A program made the translations under genes and the position numbers. The notes beneath the pieces are model-generated. The model saw only the letters and a list, made by a program, of their open reading frames with translations, searched no databases and was not told the DNA's origin. 64,000 nt of DNA from Bigelowiella natans CCMP2755 (Eukaryota > Protista > Cercozoa), in NCBI GenBank assembly GCA_000320545.1, contig ADNK01003121.1, forward strand, positions 20,062 to 84,061, read 5' to 3'. Below are positions 897 to 53,800 of the stretch, piece by piece; the stretch's first letter is position 1, and each line of letters starts with the position of its first letter.

Positions 897-3100
897 ATGT
901 CAACGCCCCAGCCAGCGGCAAGACGGCGTTTCCCGATTTTGAGCGCCTCTAGAAGATATGCTGTGCAACTAGGAAGGTATGGACGTCCCGATGAAGGAGC
1001 CAAGGAAGCAGCTCCAGAGGCCAAGTCGAAATTCAAGGGATTGATTCGGAGGGGAGGCGGAAGAGGACAACCGAGAGAACGAATCAAAGAGAGAAGCCAC
1101 AAATCAAGAAATGAAGCCGATATCTAGATGACGACTTGGGTAAATCGGAATGTCGCAAGATATATGACGAACAGTTGGCATTTCTTCTCTGCGACATCAG
1201 TTGTACACTTATAAACAACTATCCCGGTTTGGTCCGAATTGTAACAGACGTTATTTTTTCAATTTTTCCTTGCGACAAGGAAATTTATCCTTTTATCGAA
1301 TTAATTGTGTCCATTTCGCTGGTAATCAACGAGTGAGTACTATCCCTTCCCGGCCCTCGTAAAGCCTCGTAAGGGACGCAGAAGGGGGAACGATCTTGGA
1401 GCTTCTTTCTCACTTCCAGAGAACAACATGAGCTTACCACGTAAGGAAAACACAAATAAGAACACAAAATTGTGTTGATGCTTTAGCGAGTCCTCATGTA
1501 AACCACTACTTTCTATGGTGCGAGTTGGCTTGTTGCTGTTCATCTTATCACACACACAAACACGCACAATGTTCTACTCGCAATCTGATCTTCATATGCT
1601 CGATTTGCTTAACTATGCAGGTATCGGCAGCATGAGACGTGCTGAGAGTCCAATCCCAGGGGTGAGAATGCCAATGAGTGAGGAGGAAAAACAACCCATT
1701 CTTTTCTCATGCTCTTCTTCTCTGAGAAGATGATTTATTTCTATGCCTCATCGATGTTCTCACTTTGTCTTCATTGCCACAACTCCTGCACCACCCCCGC
1801 CTTGCGAATCATTCTCTCAATAGGCTCGGAATTCATTGGGCAGAGTATCTTCTTTGCGACGATCTGGACTACAGTTACGTTGATATTTTCGCAAGTAACC
1901 CACCGTCTCTTGACAGTTGATACATCGTTTAATAGAATATCCAACTCTCCTCGAAGCTCTCCCAGGAGTTCTCCAAAGCTGACACCAAGGCGCCTTAGCC
2001 ATAACGTATGTGCTGGGGGGGGGGAGGAGACTTCGCCAGCTCTAATTTTTCTTCGAACTAATCAGCTAATTCATATCTTCTCGCGATTTTTATAACAAGT
2101 GCATACAAGCGTTGAAGGCAACGACGACGTTGATGTTGCTGCTACTAATGGCTTCTGCTTTTGCTCACATTTTCCGCATCTGCATTTTAGGTACGAATCG
2201 AAACGAACAGCCCTAGAATGAGCATGAGAGCGCTAAGAACATCGGTAACAACAACTACACTCTGTGATGAAAAAACGAGGATTGATATGTGAGATTGATT
2301 TATGTTAGTACCGCCACCCATAAATGCAAGAGAAGCCTATTCGCCCTGCAGAAACAGAATCCCCTCCCTATGCCTGCTCCCCTCCCCTCCCCTCTACCTG
2401 GATGGATTGATTGGTACTAACCACGGAAATATGATTAATCTCAGCCTCCCAGCGACTCAGCGCTACAGAAAGATGCAAAGAGGTATGATGATAGCCTCGA
2501 AGCGCCAATAAGCAGTGATTTTATCCCCTCCAACCAATCATTTCACCCAACGATGGCTATCGTACCCATATGTTGTTTTGTTTGCTCACCTCTGTTCCTC
2601 TCTCATCACAATGTAGCAGCGCAACTAATTCGCGACGAAGGGCGACCGAGAGGGCTCATAGCCTTCTGAGTCCTGGTGGGGGCAGGTATCTATCGTAGGC
2701 GTAGCAGTCTTCAAACATCGAATCAGCACTCTCGTTGCCTCCAAGATTCTGATGGAGAGATAAAAGCAATTTTACCATGCATCATTGATCTCTTCCTTCT
2801 TCGCAGATACAAGCCAGCCTCCCCGGCAAGAAGACTGTCAGAAAACACATCCTCTCAGTTTGGGTAATATGATACAGTACAATTCGACTTCGCATGTCAA
2901 GTGGAGGGGGGGGGGGGGGGAAGATGAGGGAGTGAGAGGAACAAGATGCGTCGAATCCGAGCCAAAGCTGTAGTAGTAGTTGTAGGTAGTAGTAGTAAGT
3001 AGGCCCCTCAATGGGAAAATGATCATCTTGATGCTGTTCCATTTATTTTAATAGGAAAATGTCGATTGGAGGGAACTCTGCCTCGAGGAGAAGGAGAGGT

Positions 3101-42811: not shown

Positions 42812-45673
42812 TTACTACCTGCTTTACGCATCCGAGCCTTAAGTGGGCATCGATATACGATGGATACTTTGCGCTTATGTCTTTGTAAATCTTCTCCGCC
42901 TCTTCAAAGTCCCCGCTGCGTTCCGCAACTAGTGCGGTATTGTATTGGATGCTTGCTAGTATTGGCGGTTGTGATGATGAAGAAGAAGACGATGAGGAAA
43001 CAGCAGCCTCATCCTGCTCGATCTCCATCTGTTAGCAAAGAGCAGGGCAGTGTTAACTAGTATAAACATAAAAGTATACCATACAGCCTCGCAAATACCA
43101 ACAGCAGCAGCAGTACCAGTACTTGTAGTAGTAGTACCAGGAATCATAGGAAAAACACAAAATTTTCCCCCTCCTCCTCCTCCTCCTCCTCAATTGCTAA
43201 TCCCTTAACAATCACCACACCACAACAAACTACAACCTATCATTGACCTGGTTCGTGGTATCATCTTTGCTGCTGCTGCTGGTACTTTTTGGCACATTCT
43301 TGGTATCACCGTCTGCATTGTTCTTAGGACCATCATTAGTGTTGCTCTGAAGCTGCTGCTGCAGAAGTTTTTCTCTGGCTTGCTTGAAGGCACTTTTTGC
43401 TACTTTCGATTTCCCAAGGAGATGCTTGAGAACTCCCACGTTATTCCACAATTGATACGGAAGCTCTTGTTTTTTTTCAGTAAGCACTTTAATTGCCTTG
43501 TCATAGTGCTCTAAAGCCACAACCGGATTGATGCGCTCATAGCTCTCTGCCAGCTCCACAAATAGGCTGGCATCGTTCGGAAAGTACTTGACAGCCTTGT
43601 GTAGCAGCTTTTGGCCTTCCTTGAACCGTCTCTTGCCAAGGTATAGAGAGCCAAGGATTCGCATTGCTTGGTGATTCTCAGGATGACCATGGAACACTGA
43701 TTCCATGCACTTGATGGCCTCGTCTCTGCGACCTTTAAGTACATGAATTTGGCCAAGACCGAATTGGGCGAGGTAGTGTTTTGGGTTTTGCTCAACAGCT
43801 TTTGCATACAAACGACCGGCCTCTTTAATAAAATTCTGTTTCTGCGTTTGATCTTGCTCCTTTCCATTGTTTCCACCCCGTGCATGATAGCATCGGGCGA
43901 TCTGATAGTAAGCTTCTGCACGCGTACGGGGGCTAGGTGCAAAATCAAATGCACGCCTTGTAAGTACCTGCAGATTCGAATAGAGTTGAGTTGGTAACTT
44001 GAAATATGTCAAAAAATGTGAATATATACATATGATGATGTGTACATGAAAACCTCCTCCTCTACCCCCTCCATCAACTCCTACCTCTCTATATACGATT
44101 GTATTGCTTCTATTAAAGACGACTTTGATGTAATGATGCTACCTACCTCGACGGTTTTATAGTTCCCGTGATAAAAGTTGACGAAAGCTAGAAGATTGCA
44201 CAGCATTGAATTTGTCGGGTCCAACCGATACGCTTTTTTAAGAAGCGTAATTCCCTTTTGCACTGCTGCGACGTCTTTGTCTTTTTGATTTATGAGGCAA
44301 TTAGCAAGGCACACAAGGCCTACCACGTTATCGGGTTCAAGACTTAACACGCGTTCGAATGCTTGGCGTGCACGTGTTGAACGACCTAATCGATGTAGAC
44401 ACATTCCAATTCCATTGCGAATACCCACGCAACCGGGGTGTAAACGAAGAGCTTGGCGGTATATTCTAAGCGCCTCCTTATAGCCATCTTCAGTGTTTCT
44501 GTGGAACTGAGTGCAAGCACGTCCCAACATTGCAGGCACGTTTTGAGGGTCCGCTTGAAGGGCATTTTTGAAGGTTTCACGAGCATCTCGGTAGCGTTTT
44601 TTGTGAAACTGAAGCAGCCCACGTAGAACAATAGTGTACCCATTTTCTGCATTGGCCTGTAAGCTCTCGTTGATGTCGTTGGAAGCGCTTGTTTCGAGAT
44701 TCATGAGCTTTTTTTTCTTCTCATCTGCTTGCTGACGAGAGTCGGTGGATGCAATGCAGATCTTCATGGCCTCTTCAATAGAGCAAGCTGCTCGAGCATT
44801 TCTAAGCTTGACTTTATTCTCCCTGAAGCGAGATATCTCCTGCCTGACCTCCATTTGATATTTCAGTGGGACTGAATCTCGAAGATATGCGAACCTTTCC
44901 TTGAGCCGGTCGGTAAATACTTGTTCAAAAGCTGAATATAGTAGTTCAAACTATTACCCACGTGCAACTGCGTGTTTCCGAGGTTTCAATACATTTTGTG
45001 ACAATTTCCAAGTTTCGAAAGCTTATTGAAAAGAAAACAGAGAGAGGGGGGGGGGGGGGGAAGGGAGATACTATCACAAAACAAGCACCTGGCTCCAGAG
45101 AGTTCGTCAAAATATCTTTAAAGGCGTCATAATTGCCTCTTTTGTAAAATTCGTACTGGAAGGTTTTATCAACAAAAGAGGCAAACAACAGGTTAAAAAA
45201 CATGATACAATTTCAACCTACGATACGTAAAGCGTGTTTGCCAACTGGCTATCTATAACGAGACGGTTGAGTCGTCGCATGGCAGCAGCAGCAGCAGCCC
45301 TAAATATTAGTACCCCGACTTGGAGCCATGTGTCCTGCGAACTCATCTCCATGGCAAGCAATTGATTGATCATATCTAATCGATCAGTATTGAAATCTTC
45401 TTCTCCAATCTGTGCGTAATTTATGGAGGCATTTTAGGTAGATAACAAGAAGCAATGCGGGAGACCATGGGCGCTAAAATTACTGATAATCATCTTTCTG
45501 TTTCTGATTATAGAATGTATTCTATGTGGTAACAACTTTCGAATTAGCAAACTCACCACTACAGCCATGGTATCATCCACACGGACAAGAATTCCACGAT
45601 GACCGCCTTCTCCTTCCACATTTGCTGCTGCCACCGTTTCGGCTACAGCAGCAGCTGGCATCTCATTCGCCAT
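38962..45673 (-). CDS. CTR9: RNA polymerase-associated protein CTR9 (PAF1 complex, TPR repeats)
   Basis: Many TPRs with CTR9-typical segments (ALRIYRQALRLHPGC..GIGMC; YIDAHLRLGC; DPKNIYAANG; NLGHVYTHLKQYPNAVQSYE; HLAP....WYNLGIA) and an acidic tail ending KRRRVIVDEEEDQD. Confidence 0.92.
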
Positions 45674-49798: not shown

Positions 49799-50749
49799 CC
49801 GAGCTGAATACGAGCAGCTGCGAATAACAATCAATTCTAGAATAATTGTACAGCTACTACGCTTACCTACTACTCGCAGTGATGACCTATTCATTATGAA
49901 TTGCGTCTAGCAGCTAGCCAGAGATGCTTGTGCTATATGTGGCTATCTATCACTATTTGTCTCTGATAAACATCAATGACACTCCATCGGAATCAACCTG
50001 AAATGCCCTGAATAGGCTGTTCTGTCGAGTTCTGTCCAATTTAGATCTACCAGTCTAGAGGTACCATGCTGATCGTATTCGCGCTCAATGCAATGTGCAA
50101 GTTTCCCCTGCTACTAGCATTGCATCGAGCGCATTGCACTCATTGGCGACAGTAGCGTGAATGTATGGAATAGATGCTGCGTGCAGCGCTGTGCTCACAA
50201 TTAAACTGCAGCGAAAATTTATTAAACGCTAAGTGTGTGATGCGTATACATGCTGCTACGGACATACACAACAAATACAAAAACAATCCACACAGCGAGC
50301 GTGCACTTTCGCCTGGACAAGTGGATTTAGAGATGTCGTCGATCATTACAACAACAACGTCCAAGGCGACATTTCCCTCGCTAGTTTGGCGCTCCGCTCA
50401 TCTTGCGTGCGAGTGAGGAAACAATAAGATTCGGTTCGATTCGATTGACATTGCTGCAACATACACATGTACGTACAATATATGTGCGATACGATCTTAA
50501 TTACAACATCATATAAGCTACTGTATGCCTTCCAAGTTGTGTTCCTCGCTACTTTTCACTGATCATTACAAATTTCCAGCAACTGAAAGGCAAATAAACT
50601 TACCGCACATAGCTAGAGCGGTACAAACAATGACAGAGGTAGAACAGAGCAGAGAAAGAGAGAGAGGGAGAGAGAGAGAGAGGGGGGGGGGGGGAAGGGG
50701 GGGGGGGGGGACATGTGCCAATGTGCAGTCTACGGTTGCATGTATTTCT

Positions 50750-51217
50750 TCACTCGTCCTTTTCCTTTGCTCCCGACGTAGGCGCTTCCCCGCACATGGC
50801 GATCCCAGTGATCAGGATAATCAAAGCAGGGATGATTGTGACGCATGACATCAACAGAGCCGCAGTCACCGGCGAGGACGCGCCCATGGGCATCTTCTGC
50901 AGCTCGCTCCCGTTATTGTCCTTCAGCAGCTCATTACTCTCTCCATATGCAGCCATGATAGCGTATGCCAGTGGATTGTCAATTCCCGCAATAGCCGCCA
51001 GTAGAGCGGTGATCGTTTTCATCATGGGGGAGAGCCCAGAGTAAGGAAGTGCAAAGGCGATCATGAAAAGCATCGTTCCGTTGTGTGCGAGCTGGTGGTG
51101 ACATCCGCGGAACGCAGCGTATCCTGTGGCCAGGGGCGTGTTTCCAGCGAAGCCGTACACGCTGGCGACGAGGTATTCGAGGAAGGCGAGGATGTACAGG
51201 GACTTCTGCGAGTCCAT
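50750..51217 (-). CDS. Intronless small multi-TM membrane protein resembling styrene-oxide isomerase (StyC) family heme proteins
   Basis: 155-aa ORF. RGCHHQLAHNGTMLFMIAFALP and AGIDNPLAY align by eye with the StyC pattern R.H....LNGMM....AF.LP and .G..N...Y. Confidence 0.6.
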   Translation of the reverse strand: MDSQKSLYILAFLEYLVASVYGFAGNTPLATGYAAFRGCHHQLAHNGTMLFMIAFALPYSGLSPMMKTITALLAAIAGIDNPLAYAIMAAYGESNELLKDNNGSELQKMPMGASSPVTAALLMSCVTIIPALIILITGIAMCGEAPTSGAKEKDE

Positions 51218-51299: not shown

Positions 51300-52360
51300 A
51301 GAAGAACATAGGACAATCTCCAAATGCGTCATGCTCATTTCATGAAAATCTTTAGGAAAATTGCTCTCAATCATGTTTTTTTGGCGGGAAGTGCTCCGGA
51401 TTGAACGAAAACAAACGCAGGAGATTCCAGACCGATTTCCAGGCACATGTTGATTGAGGCAATCACGATGTCGCTGCTTCAAAATTGGGGTTCATTTCAA
51501 TGTAAATTCAGAAGAGTCTCGGTCGCAACGTTGGGTCTGTTCTTCACCGTGTCACTGGCTGTGACCAATCTGCCTGTGGCTTGGACCTGTTGATCAACTT
51601 GGACCAGTCCCATCCGAAACTGGTTGATGTTGACCTCAATCGCAGAGTCAGGGCTCAGCTGTCCGCCAATGGCAACTTGTGTCGCAGCTTTTACTCGTTC
51701 GTCAAACCCGATGCCCCAATCTGCAAATCCAGAGCCTGGGCGAGGAGCCACATTGGAAGGCCTGCTTCCAGATTGTTTGAGTGTTGCCTCGATGATTGGC
51801 ATGACAATTCAGGTGTGTTGCTCAAACTTCAGCTCCGTGCTGGGACTCACGAAACTGAGGAGCACAGGGCTAAAATTTGCAACTTGCCCCCCTCTTTCTC
51901 GGTGTGTCCTCTTTGCAATGCTGAAGTTGTTCAAAGTGTCAACCACCTCATCCATCATTGCACTCACTTGAATGCAGAGAGATGCAAGCTTCTCTCGCAC
52001 ATGAGATCAGTTCTGGGTTCAGCTTCTTCCCTCCACTCTTCATTCTTTGACGCTCCAGACTCCTCCAAAACCAAAATTCTGCTGGGGGCCCCCTCAGATG
52101 ATCCAATCGTGGATCGTCGTGTGGACATGGCCTTCAGGAAGTTTTTGCTCAGAGTGGACGTCTTGCGCCGTCAGAATTTTGCCACCAGTGTCATTGCTTC
52201 TCAATGACCAAGTCATGCCATTTGGCAACCCAGCTAGTTGATCTGCTGGTCACAGTCCTCACTGAAATCAGTTCGAGGCACTGCACTTTGCACACTGCAA
52301 GTGTCTTGCTACACTTTGGAAATGTAGTTTTTCATCATTGTTTCATTGTTTCATTGTTTC
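51300..52360 (+). mobile_element. 3' end of a non-LTR retrotransposon (ORF2 C-terminus with CCHC knuckle, 3' UTR, simple-repeat tail)
   Basis: LKLQLRAGTH..CPLCNAEVVQSVNHLIHHC....ER..ILLG; stop at 52207; 3' UTR ends in TTCATCATTG(TTTCATTG)n at 52331-52359. Confidence 0.8.
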
Positions 52361-52465
52361 TCCCTCTCTTCGGAGAGGGTCATCCGCAAAAATTGGAACG
52401 ACACAGAGAAGATCAGCATGGCCCCTGCGCAAGGATTTGTGCACGCACAAATCGAAATTGTGCAT
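52361..52465 (+). pseudogene. U6: U6 snRNA-derived sequence (degenerate copy or SINE head)
   Basis: 5' stem-loop CCCTCTC-TTCG-GAGAGGG, then AAAATTGGAACGAcACAGAGAAGATcAGCATGGCCCCTGCGCAAGGAT..CACGCACAAATCG. ACAGAGA box at 52403-52409. GA replaced by TTGTG after AAGGAT; no oligo-T terminator. Confidence 0.92.
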
Positions 52466-52565
52466 CTTCACTGAAGCCAGTTCAAGGCACTGCATTTCGC
52501 ACTTTGCAAGTATCTTGTCACACTTTGGAGATGTGGTTTTTCATCATTGTTCATTGTTCATTGTC
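52466..52565 (+). repeat. Second, diverged copy of the LINE 3' UTR and tail, fused to the U6 3' end
   Basis: Collinear with 52258-52359 (CACTGAA..AGTTC.AGGCACTGCA..GCAAGT.TCTTG..ACACTTTGGA.ATGT.GTTTTTCATCATTG). Confidence 0.88.
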
Positions 52566-53800
52566 TCGTTCTCTCATTGGTTCCTTGGAAAAGAAGGAAA
52601 GCACCACACGTGCCACACTTGCAAAAGTTGAACAAATGATTGGAACGAACGTTGGTGCACGGCCTCCCATGCCAGCACGACCGGCCAGACAGGAGAAGAA
52701 GCTAGCAGATCATGGCCATCTTGTCCCGAAAAAGGAAACTTGAAAATTGAAGCCAAGTTTGATCGTCGATCATTGAGTGATTGAGTGGATGGCATTGGAC
52801 CGTGGACGTGCGCACATGCGACAAGCATGACACACATTGCACGGGTTGTGTCCATCGAACATGCCAGCATGTCTAGATGTGTGACTGTGGACATGCGTGC
52901 ACGACATGCTAGCACTGGAGCATGACAGTCTAGCAGTGTGAGCCTGGTGATGTGCATTGTGTGCACCAGTGTGATGTGTCCATTGTTTGGTTCATTCATT
53001 CGTTCAGCACACCTAGACACTTCCAAGTGGACGTTCAGCAGGATGAGCTGCTGGCAACCACTCCTCTGGTCCAGTGGTCCTCCTGGGATCCGATGACTCG
53101 TCAGTCGTGCTTGCACACTCATCAAAACGCGTGATGATGTTGCACATGCATGTCCACCATCGTGAGCTAGTGAGTGATGTGTGTGCGGACATGTCTGGCT
53201 AGCTGGGTGTGCAGGCTAGCAGGTGCTTTGCAGTGTGTGCAAAGCAGGATGTGCGATTCACAGCCAGACAGTGTTGTCCAGCAGTGCCAGCAAACTTCGT
53301 TGCCGTTCTAGCGTTGGCTTTTTGTGAGAAAGCCGCCAACGCCTGAACCCTCGTGCGGCGCAGGTGTTTGGATGTGCGACGTCCCACAGGCGGCAATGAC
53401 TCAAACGTGTGGATTGTCAGAGCCAGAGAGCTAGAGAGAAACCCAGCAACAAACAACGATGAGAGGCTGCCAAGCCAGTCAAAATGAGGCGCAAACCTGA
53501 AATTTGACACGGCTAGACGACAGTGTGCATGGAAGAACATGCATGTGACGTCTAGCTCCAGACAAGCACGTGGACATGCTGTCATCTGCCTACCTCTAGA
53601 CCTCTGGCCTAGCAGCTGTGCCCCTTCTAGCTAGCTAGACTTGGATCGATGTTCAATTCAAACTAGCAAAAGTGACATCAGCACTAGCAATGAGCGAATG
53701 CGGCACAATTGTGATGCACAAATGTGCATGGATGAGCATTGCACGAACTTTTCGTGGAGCTGCGAGGCACTCGCTGATCCTCACATGTAGTGGCCTGCTA
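52566..53800. other. Degenerate TpA-depleted, CTAG-enriched island (probable decayed repeats)
   Basis: Manual count for 52520-53760: 20 TA, 19 of them inside CTAG. Confidence 0.8.

Follow-up and report, generated by a model that had tools for sequence, protein, structure and literature searches.

U6/L1 chimeric retropseudogenes of mammals are reportedly known from the work of Buzdin in 2002 and of Garcia-Perez in 2007. U6/LINE chimeras have been a main source of insight into the template switches and RNA ligation that accompany LINE retrotransposition. Excerpts from Doucet 2015 (PMC4476161) report U6 chimeras with L1 in mammals and with L2, RTE and SINEs in platypus, opossum and Anolis, and in these excerpts U6 switching is regarded as a general property of non-LTR elements. 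The same excerpts describe 'stringent' LINEs of the L2 type, which recognise their own 3´ structure and prime on the tail repeat, and give small target-site duplications (TSDs) for L2, which has a simple-repeat tail (PMC4476161). Tripartite chimeras with three retro-copied parts arranged head to tail and the LINE 3´ end last have been described in Magnaporthe (WEIRD-MgSINE-MGL) and in mouse (B2-U6-L1) (PMC2104539). No U6/LINE chimera outside vertebrates was found in the literature searched.

The U6 fusions described here, from Bigelowiella natans, share with mammalian U6/L1 a promoterless U6 whose 3´ end is fused in the same orientation to a 5´-truncated LINE, variable junctions, and a product that is dead on arrival. 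In contrast to the mammalian chimeras, the LINE part ends in a 3´ module with predicted structure and a 7–8 nt repeat tail instead of poly(A), the TSDs are very short, and the host is a chlorarachniophyte alga and not a vertebrate. As far as the excerpts of Doucet 2015 describe them (PMC4476161), the U6-L2 and U6-SINE (Mon-1, AnolisSINE2) chimeras of platypus and Anolis likewise have a 'stringent' partner with a simple-repeat tail, TSDs of 1–9 bp, short LINE parts and a 5´-truncated U6, the last seen here in one copy (C2031). They differ in that four of the five U6 parts are nearly full length in the alga.

The locus lies in a 64,000-nt stretch of contig ADNK01003121.1, hereafter the window, to which all coordinates refer unless a locus is named. 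It begins with a 5´-truncated LINE copy of the family termed LINE-A, whose homology to other copies starts at 51521. The C-terminal coding part of ORF2 (51521–52207, plus strand) holds a reading frame that is open from 51581 to a stop codon at 52205–52207, and a Cys/His motif in this part is read as a putative CCHC-type knuckle. The 3´ UTR follows at 52208–52332 (+), and its last ~80 nt, from ~52253, form a conserved 3´ module. The copy ends in tail 1 (52333–52360, +), a complete LINE-A tail with an 8-nt unit that consists of CATCATTG, two TTTCATTG units and TTTC. Most of the simple LINE-A copies displayed carry this type of tail, some of them with one or two substitutions. A U6 snRNA retrocopy (52361–52464, +) begins directly after tail 1 and leads through a junction zone, TCTT (52465–52468, +), into a second 3´ module (52469–52541, +) that is 5´-truncated at LINE-A position ~736 of 839. 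Tail 2 (52542–52563, +), composed of CATCATTG and two TTCATTG units, closes the composite. The two LINE ends form an 87-nt direct repeat (52256–52342 and 52465–52551) with 85% identity, and both ends terminate in short tandem repeats. Upstream of the composite, a GA-rich run followed by G-runs of at least 13 nt occupies 50642–50715, just upstream of a minus-strand ORF (50750–51217), and a similar tract lies at 45028–45065.

The LINE part that follows the U6 aligns to LINE-A positions 736–837 in the same orientation and ends in a repeat tail, and its closest relatives belong to a second subfamily, A2. Tail 1 is 92–96% identical to other LINE-A tails. Tail 2 is 90–95% identical to A2-type tails and just 82–85% identical to LINE-A tails, and its 7-nt unit is the one usual for A2 copies, compared with 8 nt in LINE-A. 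A2 tails are also found on longer ORF-bearing LINE pieces that are 70–79% identical to LINE-A as far as position 49, and these longer pieces encode related ORF2 ends. The two tails therefore differ because they derive from two LINE subfamilies, both of them autonomous lineages as judged from their coding parts. An origin in two subfamilies means that the tail differences are no evidence of a separate non-autonomous element, and the first-pass annotation, which had read them as the mark of a separately evolving element mobilised by this LINE, is corrected on this point: tail 1 belongs to LINE-A and tail 2 to A2.

The U6 copy matches Rfam RF00026 at 52362–52471 (+) over the full model (1–105) with 61.2 bits (E 5.5e-13). 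Alignment to the canonical genes places the homology from 52361/52362 to 52464–52468, and both Rfam and BLAST identify the copy, which lacks the first 2–3 nt and the oligo-T end. The Rfam match and the 85% similarity of the flanking tails agree with the initial description of a near-full-length U6 between two LINE 3´ ends, whose coordinates were correct. BLAST identity to the canonical gene is 91%, which corresponds to 9% divergence. The GA-to-TTGTG replacement noted at first pass was recovered in the alignment, where canonical GATGACACGC has become GATTTGTGCACGC. This replacement produces a perfect 9+9 inverted repeat (52434–52453, +) that is absent from the canonical gene at locus L001, and the change would best be understood as a templated (snap-back or quasi-palindrome) mutation and not as a feature of a variant U6. 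The base of the stem-loop is broken and no T-run terminator is present. The absence of the oligo-T end, also noted at first pass, holds, and the four other retrocopies retain 5–6 T directly before the LINE part. The 100 nt on the 5´ side of the U6, in the position of the canonical promoter, are LINE UTR and tail, and the CCTGGAA and GGCCCAGG motifs of the canonical genes at L001 and L002 were not found upstream of it. Judged by its identity to the canonical gene, the TTGTG replacement, the T run and the upstream motifs, the copy does not qualify as a functional snRNA gene. It is a pseudogene without a U6 promoter that was dead on arrival.

A search of the assembly (91.4 Mb in 3736 contigs, so that counts are lower bounds) with the covariance model and, by BLAST, with canonical U6 returned the same set of exactly eight U6 loci, three canonical and five decayed. 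The canonical sequences, on C2301, C719 and C980, are identical over the common ~110 nt and score 90–97 bits, and the five decayed copies show 80–95% identity and 44–85 bits. The genome also contains five U2 matches. At L001, a canonical U6 is placed head-to-head with a U2 gene ~385 bp away (922–1116 (-) and 1501–1612 (+)). CCTGGAA lies ~66–68 nt upstream of the U6 genes at L001 and L002 and of the U2 gene at L001, and GGCCCAGG lies ~53 nt upstream of U6 in both loci. The position of these motifs suggests an external promoter, which would be lost in a retrocopy. The third canonical-sequence U6 (L003, 1400–1700) is 100% identical, has none of the common upstream motifs and ends in 4 T; (TA)n repeats flank it on both sides and a tail-like TTTCATTGTT lies ~60 nt upstream. 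This U6 could be either a retrocopy of very recent origin or a gene that uses another promoter.

All five decayed U6 copies are fused at their 3´ end to the 3´ part of a 5´-truncated LINE, and every junction is different. In the window, a U6 without its first 2–3 nt and without the T run joins LINE-A position 736 of 839. C1748 joins a full U6 to LINE-A position 792, and C1043 joins a full U6 to LINE-A position 484 (377 bp, 75%). In C2031, a 5´-truncated U6 is followed by ~600 bp of a second family, LINE-B, that ends in the same heptamer tail. In C283, a U6 without its first 2–3 nt is joined to the LINE-B 3´ end ~130 bp before its end, with a degraded tail; within this copy, which carries an insertion, the junction lies ~200 bp from the end. 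When 52361–52565 was compared with the whole assembly, its junction was found once, and every other match was confined to one half, U6 or tail. The variable junctions across the five loci point to sporadic chimeras rather than a SINE, following the test that the first-pass annotation had itself proposed. Its reading of the locus as a U6-LINE chimera is thus upheld, since each of the five non-canonical U6 copies continues into a LINE 3´ end at a junction of its own. The alternative that it had offered, a U6-derived SINE family, is not supported, given the single-copy junction, the total of eight U6 loci and the variation of junctions elsewhere.

The C1748 unit itself has three parts, a 78-bp LINE-B end, the U6 and a 45-nt LINE-A end. 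The 78-bp LINE-B end is 100% identical between C1748 (L005, 1414–1491) and C2031 (L004, ~2140–2217), oriented with U6 on the plus strand. Outside these three parts, C1748 has a possible 11/13 direct repeat, CACAGGCAACTGC / CACAGCCACCTGC.

The decay of the U6 copies is concentrated at TpA dinucleotides. Among the ancestral U6 TpA sites in the five retrocopies (window, L004, L005, L007 and L008), 19 of 20 are destroyed, 18 of them through transition to CpA or TpG. Bases at TpA sites are mutated in 19 of 40 cases, compared with 18 of 447 elsewhere (Fisher p 1.6e-13). C2031 carries only four substitutions in 79 nt, all at TpA sites, and in the window copy all four TpA sites are now CA or TG. Outcomes differ between copies at the same TpA site, so the changes are independent. 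The depletion extends over the composite: TpA observed/expected is 0.09 in 51521–52585, compared with 0.82 for the window. TpA-specific T/A-to-C/G hypermutation has been reported for Bigelowiella natans (2026 preprint, doi 10.64898/2026.01.13.699255), and the TpA loss in the U6 retrocopies matches it. Because the ancestral U6 sequence is known, the five copies record the TpA-to-CpA/TpG direction cleanly.

The partner LINE is abundant, with at least 150 LINE-A-related fragments listed by the genome search. ORFs of 542–663 aa in the longer LINE copies contain RVT_1 by Pfam, which indicates that an autonomous RT-encoding LINE is probably present in the genome. Pfam detected no domain besides RVT_1 in these longer copies, and the 431 aa that precede the RT gave no endonuclease domain even with an E cutoff of 10. 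A language-model atlas points to LINEs with an APE-type endonuclease, which serves as a lead only, and in a PDB sequence search with the LINE RT the only matches, weak ones, were R2 reverse transcriptases. The 3´ module (52253–52332 in the window and 16 other copies) is predicted by RNAalifold to fold into hairpins. Six predicted pairs persist although both of their bases have changed, as in the first hairpin, where a G-C pair has become A-U; the last ~100 nt of the LINE are likely to be a recognition structure for the reverse transcriptase. This module is common to the LINE subfamilies and to a short unit of ~190 bp. The ~190-bp unit was seen twice, at 88% identity, in L020 (~1695–1890, -) and L033 (~1075–1266, +), in both cases behind other tails, and consists of a ~90-nt body that includes CCATTCTTGATTCC and the same LINE 3´ module. 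Its identity could be that of a short, non-autonomous LINE partner, or it could correspond to the UTR of a further, third subfamily.

Simple LINE insertions are flanked by TSDs of 4–6 nt and lie in targets that look like the tail repeat; one LINE copy is inserted in an CATCCATCATTG site within another LINE. Such behaviour fits a 'stringent' LINE that would, by analogy with the L2-type elements described in excerpts of Doucet 2015 (PMC4476161), recognise its own 3´ structure and prime on the tail repeat. The LINE ends are also frequently stacked. Among the 82 LINE tails in loci L010–L063, the part of the genome covered by this count, 19 have a 5´-truncated LINE piece on the same strand no more than 60 nt behind them, and none of the 82 has a piece on the opposite strand there. 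In the stacks inspected visually, the left tail is complete. The position of the U6 unit behind a LINE tail is thus normal for this genome.

On the evidence of the alignments, the locus is very probably a sporadic U6/LINE chimeric retrocopy, a new LINE cDNA placed behind a LINE-A tail. In this process, the LINE reverse transcriptase would start target-primed reverse transcription on the 3´ tail of an A2-subfamily LINE RNA, copy ~100 nt that correspond to the predicted structured 3´ module, and proceed onto U6 snRNA, either by a template switch at the 3–4 nt microhomology or on a U6 already ligated to a LINE RNA fragment. The resulting U6 unit would be laid head-to-tail behind the complete tail of the 5´-truncated LINE-A. 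Stacking of this kind could arise if tail repeats prime the next event, or if the enzyme, on reaching the end of one RNA, continues at the 3´ end of another. The promoterless product would then decay, with four TpA sites edited, a templated replacement leading to the perfect hairpin, and the oligo-T lost. Several observations run contrary to this account. There is no clean TSD around the unit of U6 and tail 2 alone, because tail repeats occur on both sides, and the one outer repeat spans just 5–6 nt. The U6/module junction lies no more than a few nt from the 5´ edge of the conserved module, at the point where the ~190-bp unit has its body attached as well, and a non-random origin of the junction is possible given this coincidence. 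Finally, the window and C283 copies agree in their 5´ start and in all four TpA outcomes; chance agreement at the TpA sites is ~1 in 16, and a common mutated source for the two copies is possible.

How the U6 came to be joined to the LINE has two candidate answers, between which sequence alone does not discriminate. The junction zone TCTT fits either the end of U6 (CCTT) or the start of the LINE module (TCCT), and when the canonical U6 3´ end is set beside copies of the module, the window copy shows an overlap of 3–4 nt. This microhomology and the missing T run are a better fit to a template switch than to a junction made in RNA, in which the U6 3´ end would be ligated to a LINE RNA fragment by an RtcB-type reaction and the product reverse-transcribed without a switch. 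The four chimeras in which 5–6 T, the ending that a mature U6 would have, precede the LINE part point the other way, and ligation of U6 to L1 RNA has been demonstrated in human cells (PMC6789731). We regard RNA ligation as rather unlikely for the locus.

The architecture of the locus, with a small-RNA head, a LINE 3´ module and a repeat tail, is that of a SINE, and its 3´ part comes from the partner LINE. A U6 head with the ~100-nt recognition module and tail could in principle be mobilised as a U6-headed SINE or a proto-SINE at birth; the head is attached no more than a few nt from the 5´ edge of the module, as is the body of the ~190-bp unit, and snRNA-headed SINEs exist. SINEU of crocodilians, with U1/U2 heads, shares the snRNA-derived head and LINE-type 3´ part but forms multi-copy families of fixed architecture (PMC4494074), in contrast to the single copy in the window, and the other U6-LINE fusions have other junctions. 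The canonical U6 upstream motifs are absent as well, and the copy is decayed. A nascent SINE is accordingly very unlikely, and the single-copy junction, together with the differing junctions of the other fusions, leads us to reject a U6-headed SINE family. Least probable of all is a genuine U6 gene struck on either side by an independent LINE insertion, the scenario that the first-pass annotation had named as its own refutation. The single-copy junction agrees with such a history, but both LINE parts lie within 0–3 nt of the U6 ends, a LINE tail takes the place of the promoter region, the same fusion pattern recurs at four other loci, and the U6, at 9% divergence, has a disrupted stem-loop base and lacks a terminator. 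The decay of the copy and the absence of the canonical upstream motifs rule this history out.

For the preferred reading of a sporadic chimera, the number of integration events is a separate matter. A candidate TSD, GTCTC, is present on the left side at 51516–51520 (+) and recurs on the right side at 52563–52567 (+), where it is followed by tail-like target sequence to ~52585; with the next G it becomes a 6-mer, and alone it is a weak match. This GTCTC(G) repeat of 5–6 nt is the only one that brackets the whole composite of LINE-A, U6 and tail 2, and its size is near that of simple LINE-A TSDs (4–6 nt). It is quite possible that the composite is tripartite and arose in a single integration, for which the enzyme would have copied the A2 module, jumped to U6, passed from the U6 5´ end to a LINE-A RNA at its 3´ end, and copied 840 nt of the latter. 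Consistent with this, tail 1 is complete with the U6, minus 2–3 nt, directly behind it, tail 2 has the normal full length with no remnant of an 8-nt-type tail behind it, and C1748 shows the same layout with its possible 11/13 outer direct repeat. The mouse genome has tripartite B2-U6-L1 chimeras with TSDs, in which, as here, U6 occupies the middle position, and in the fungal chimeras the RNA is a different one (PMC2104539). The Magnaporthe and mouse examples differ in that TSDs of 14–16 bp prove a single event (PMC2104539), whereas just a 5–6 nt repeat is present in the window. No direct repeats of at least 6 nt were found around C1043 and C2031. A second insertion that re-used the target at the border between tail and TSD predicts the same picture as the single event; the outer repeat would then be the LINE-A TSD, and a 5-nt repeat is weak. 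A single event with two jumps and a second insertion at the tail/TSD border fit equally well. More broadly, the window composite, C1748 and perhaps most of the stacks, which make up ~23% of the tails counted, may have formed in single events by serial end-to-end template jumps, with U6 as a favoured intermediate, a possibility that we put forward as somewhat doubtful.

A pseudogene is the appropriate annotation for the locus, rather than a U6 gene or a SINE, a correction of modest practical value. Its novelty is that a kind of U6 chimera known from mammals and a lizard occurs in a distant eukaryote, with a partner LINE that carries a module of predicted structure and a heptamer tail. All decayed U6 copies in this genome are chimeras, which suggests that the special association of U6 with LINE reverse transcription holds for eukaryotes in general. 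If serial jumping is true, the stacks would not be nested insertions, the LINE of this alga would be a natural system of very frequent template jumping, and the affinity of the LINE machinery for U6 would be older than animals.
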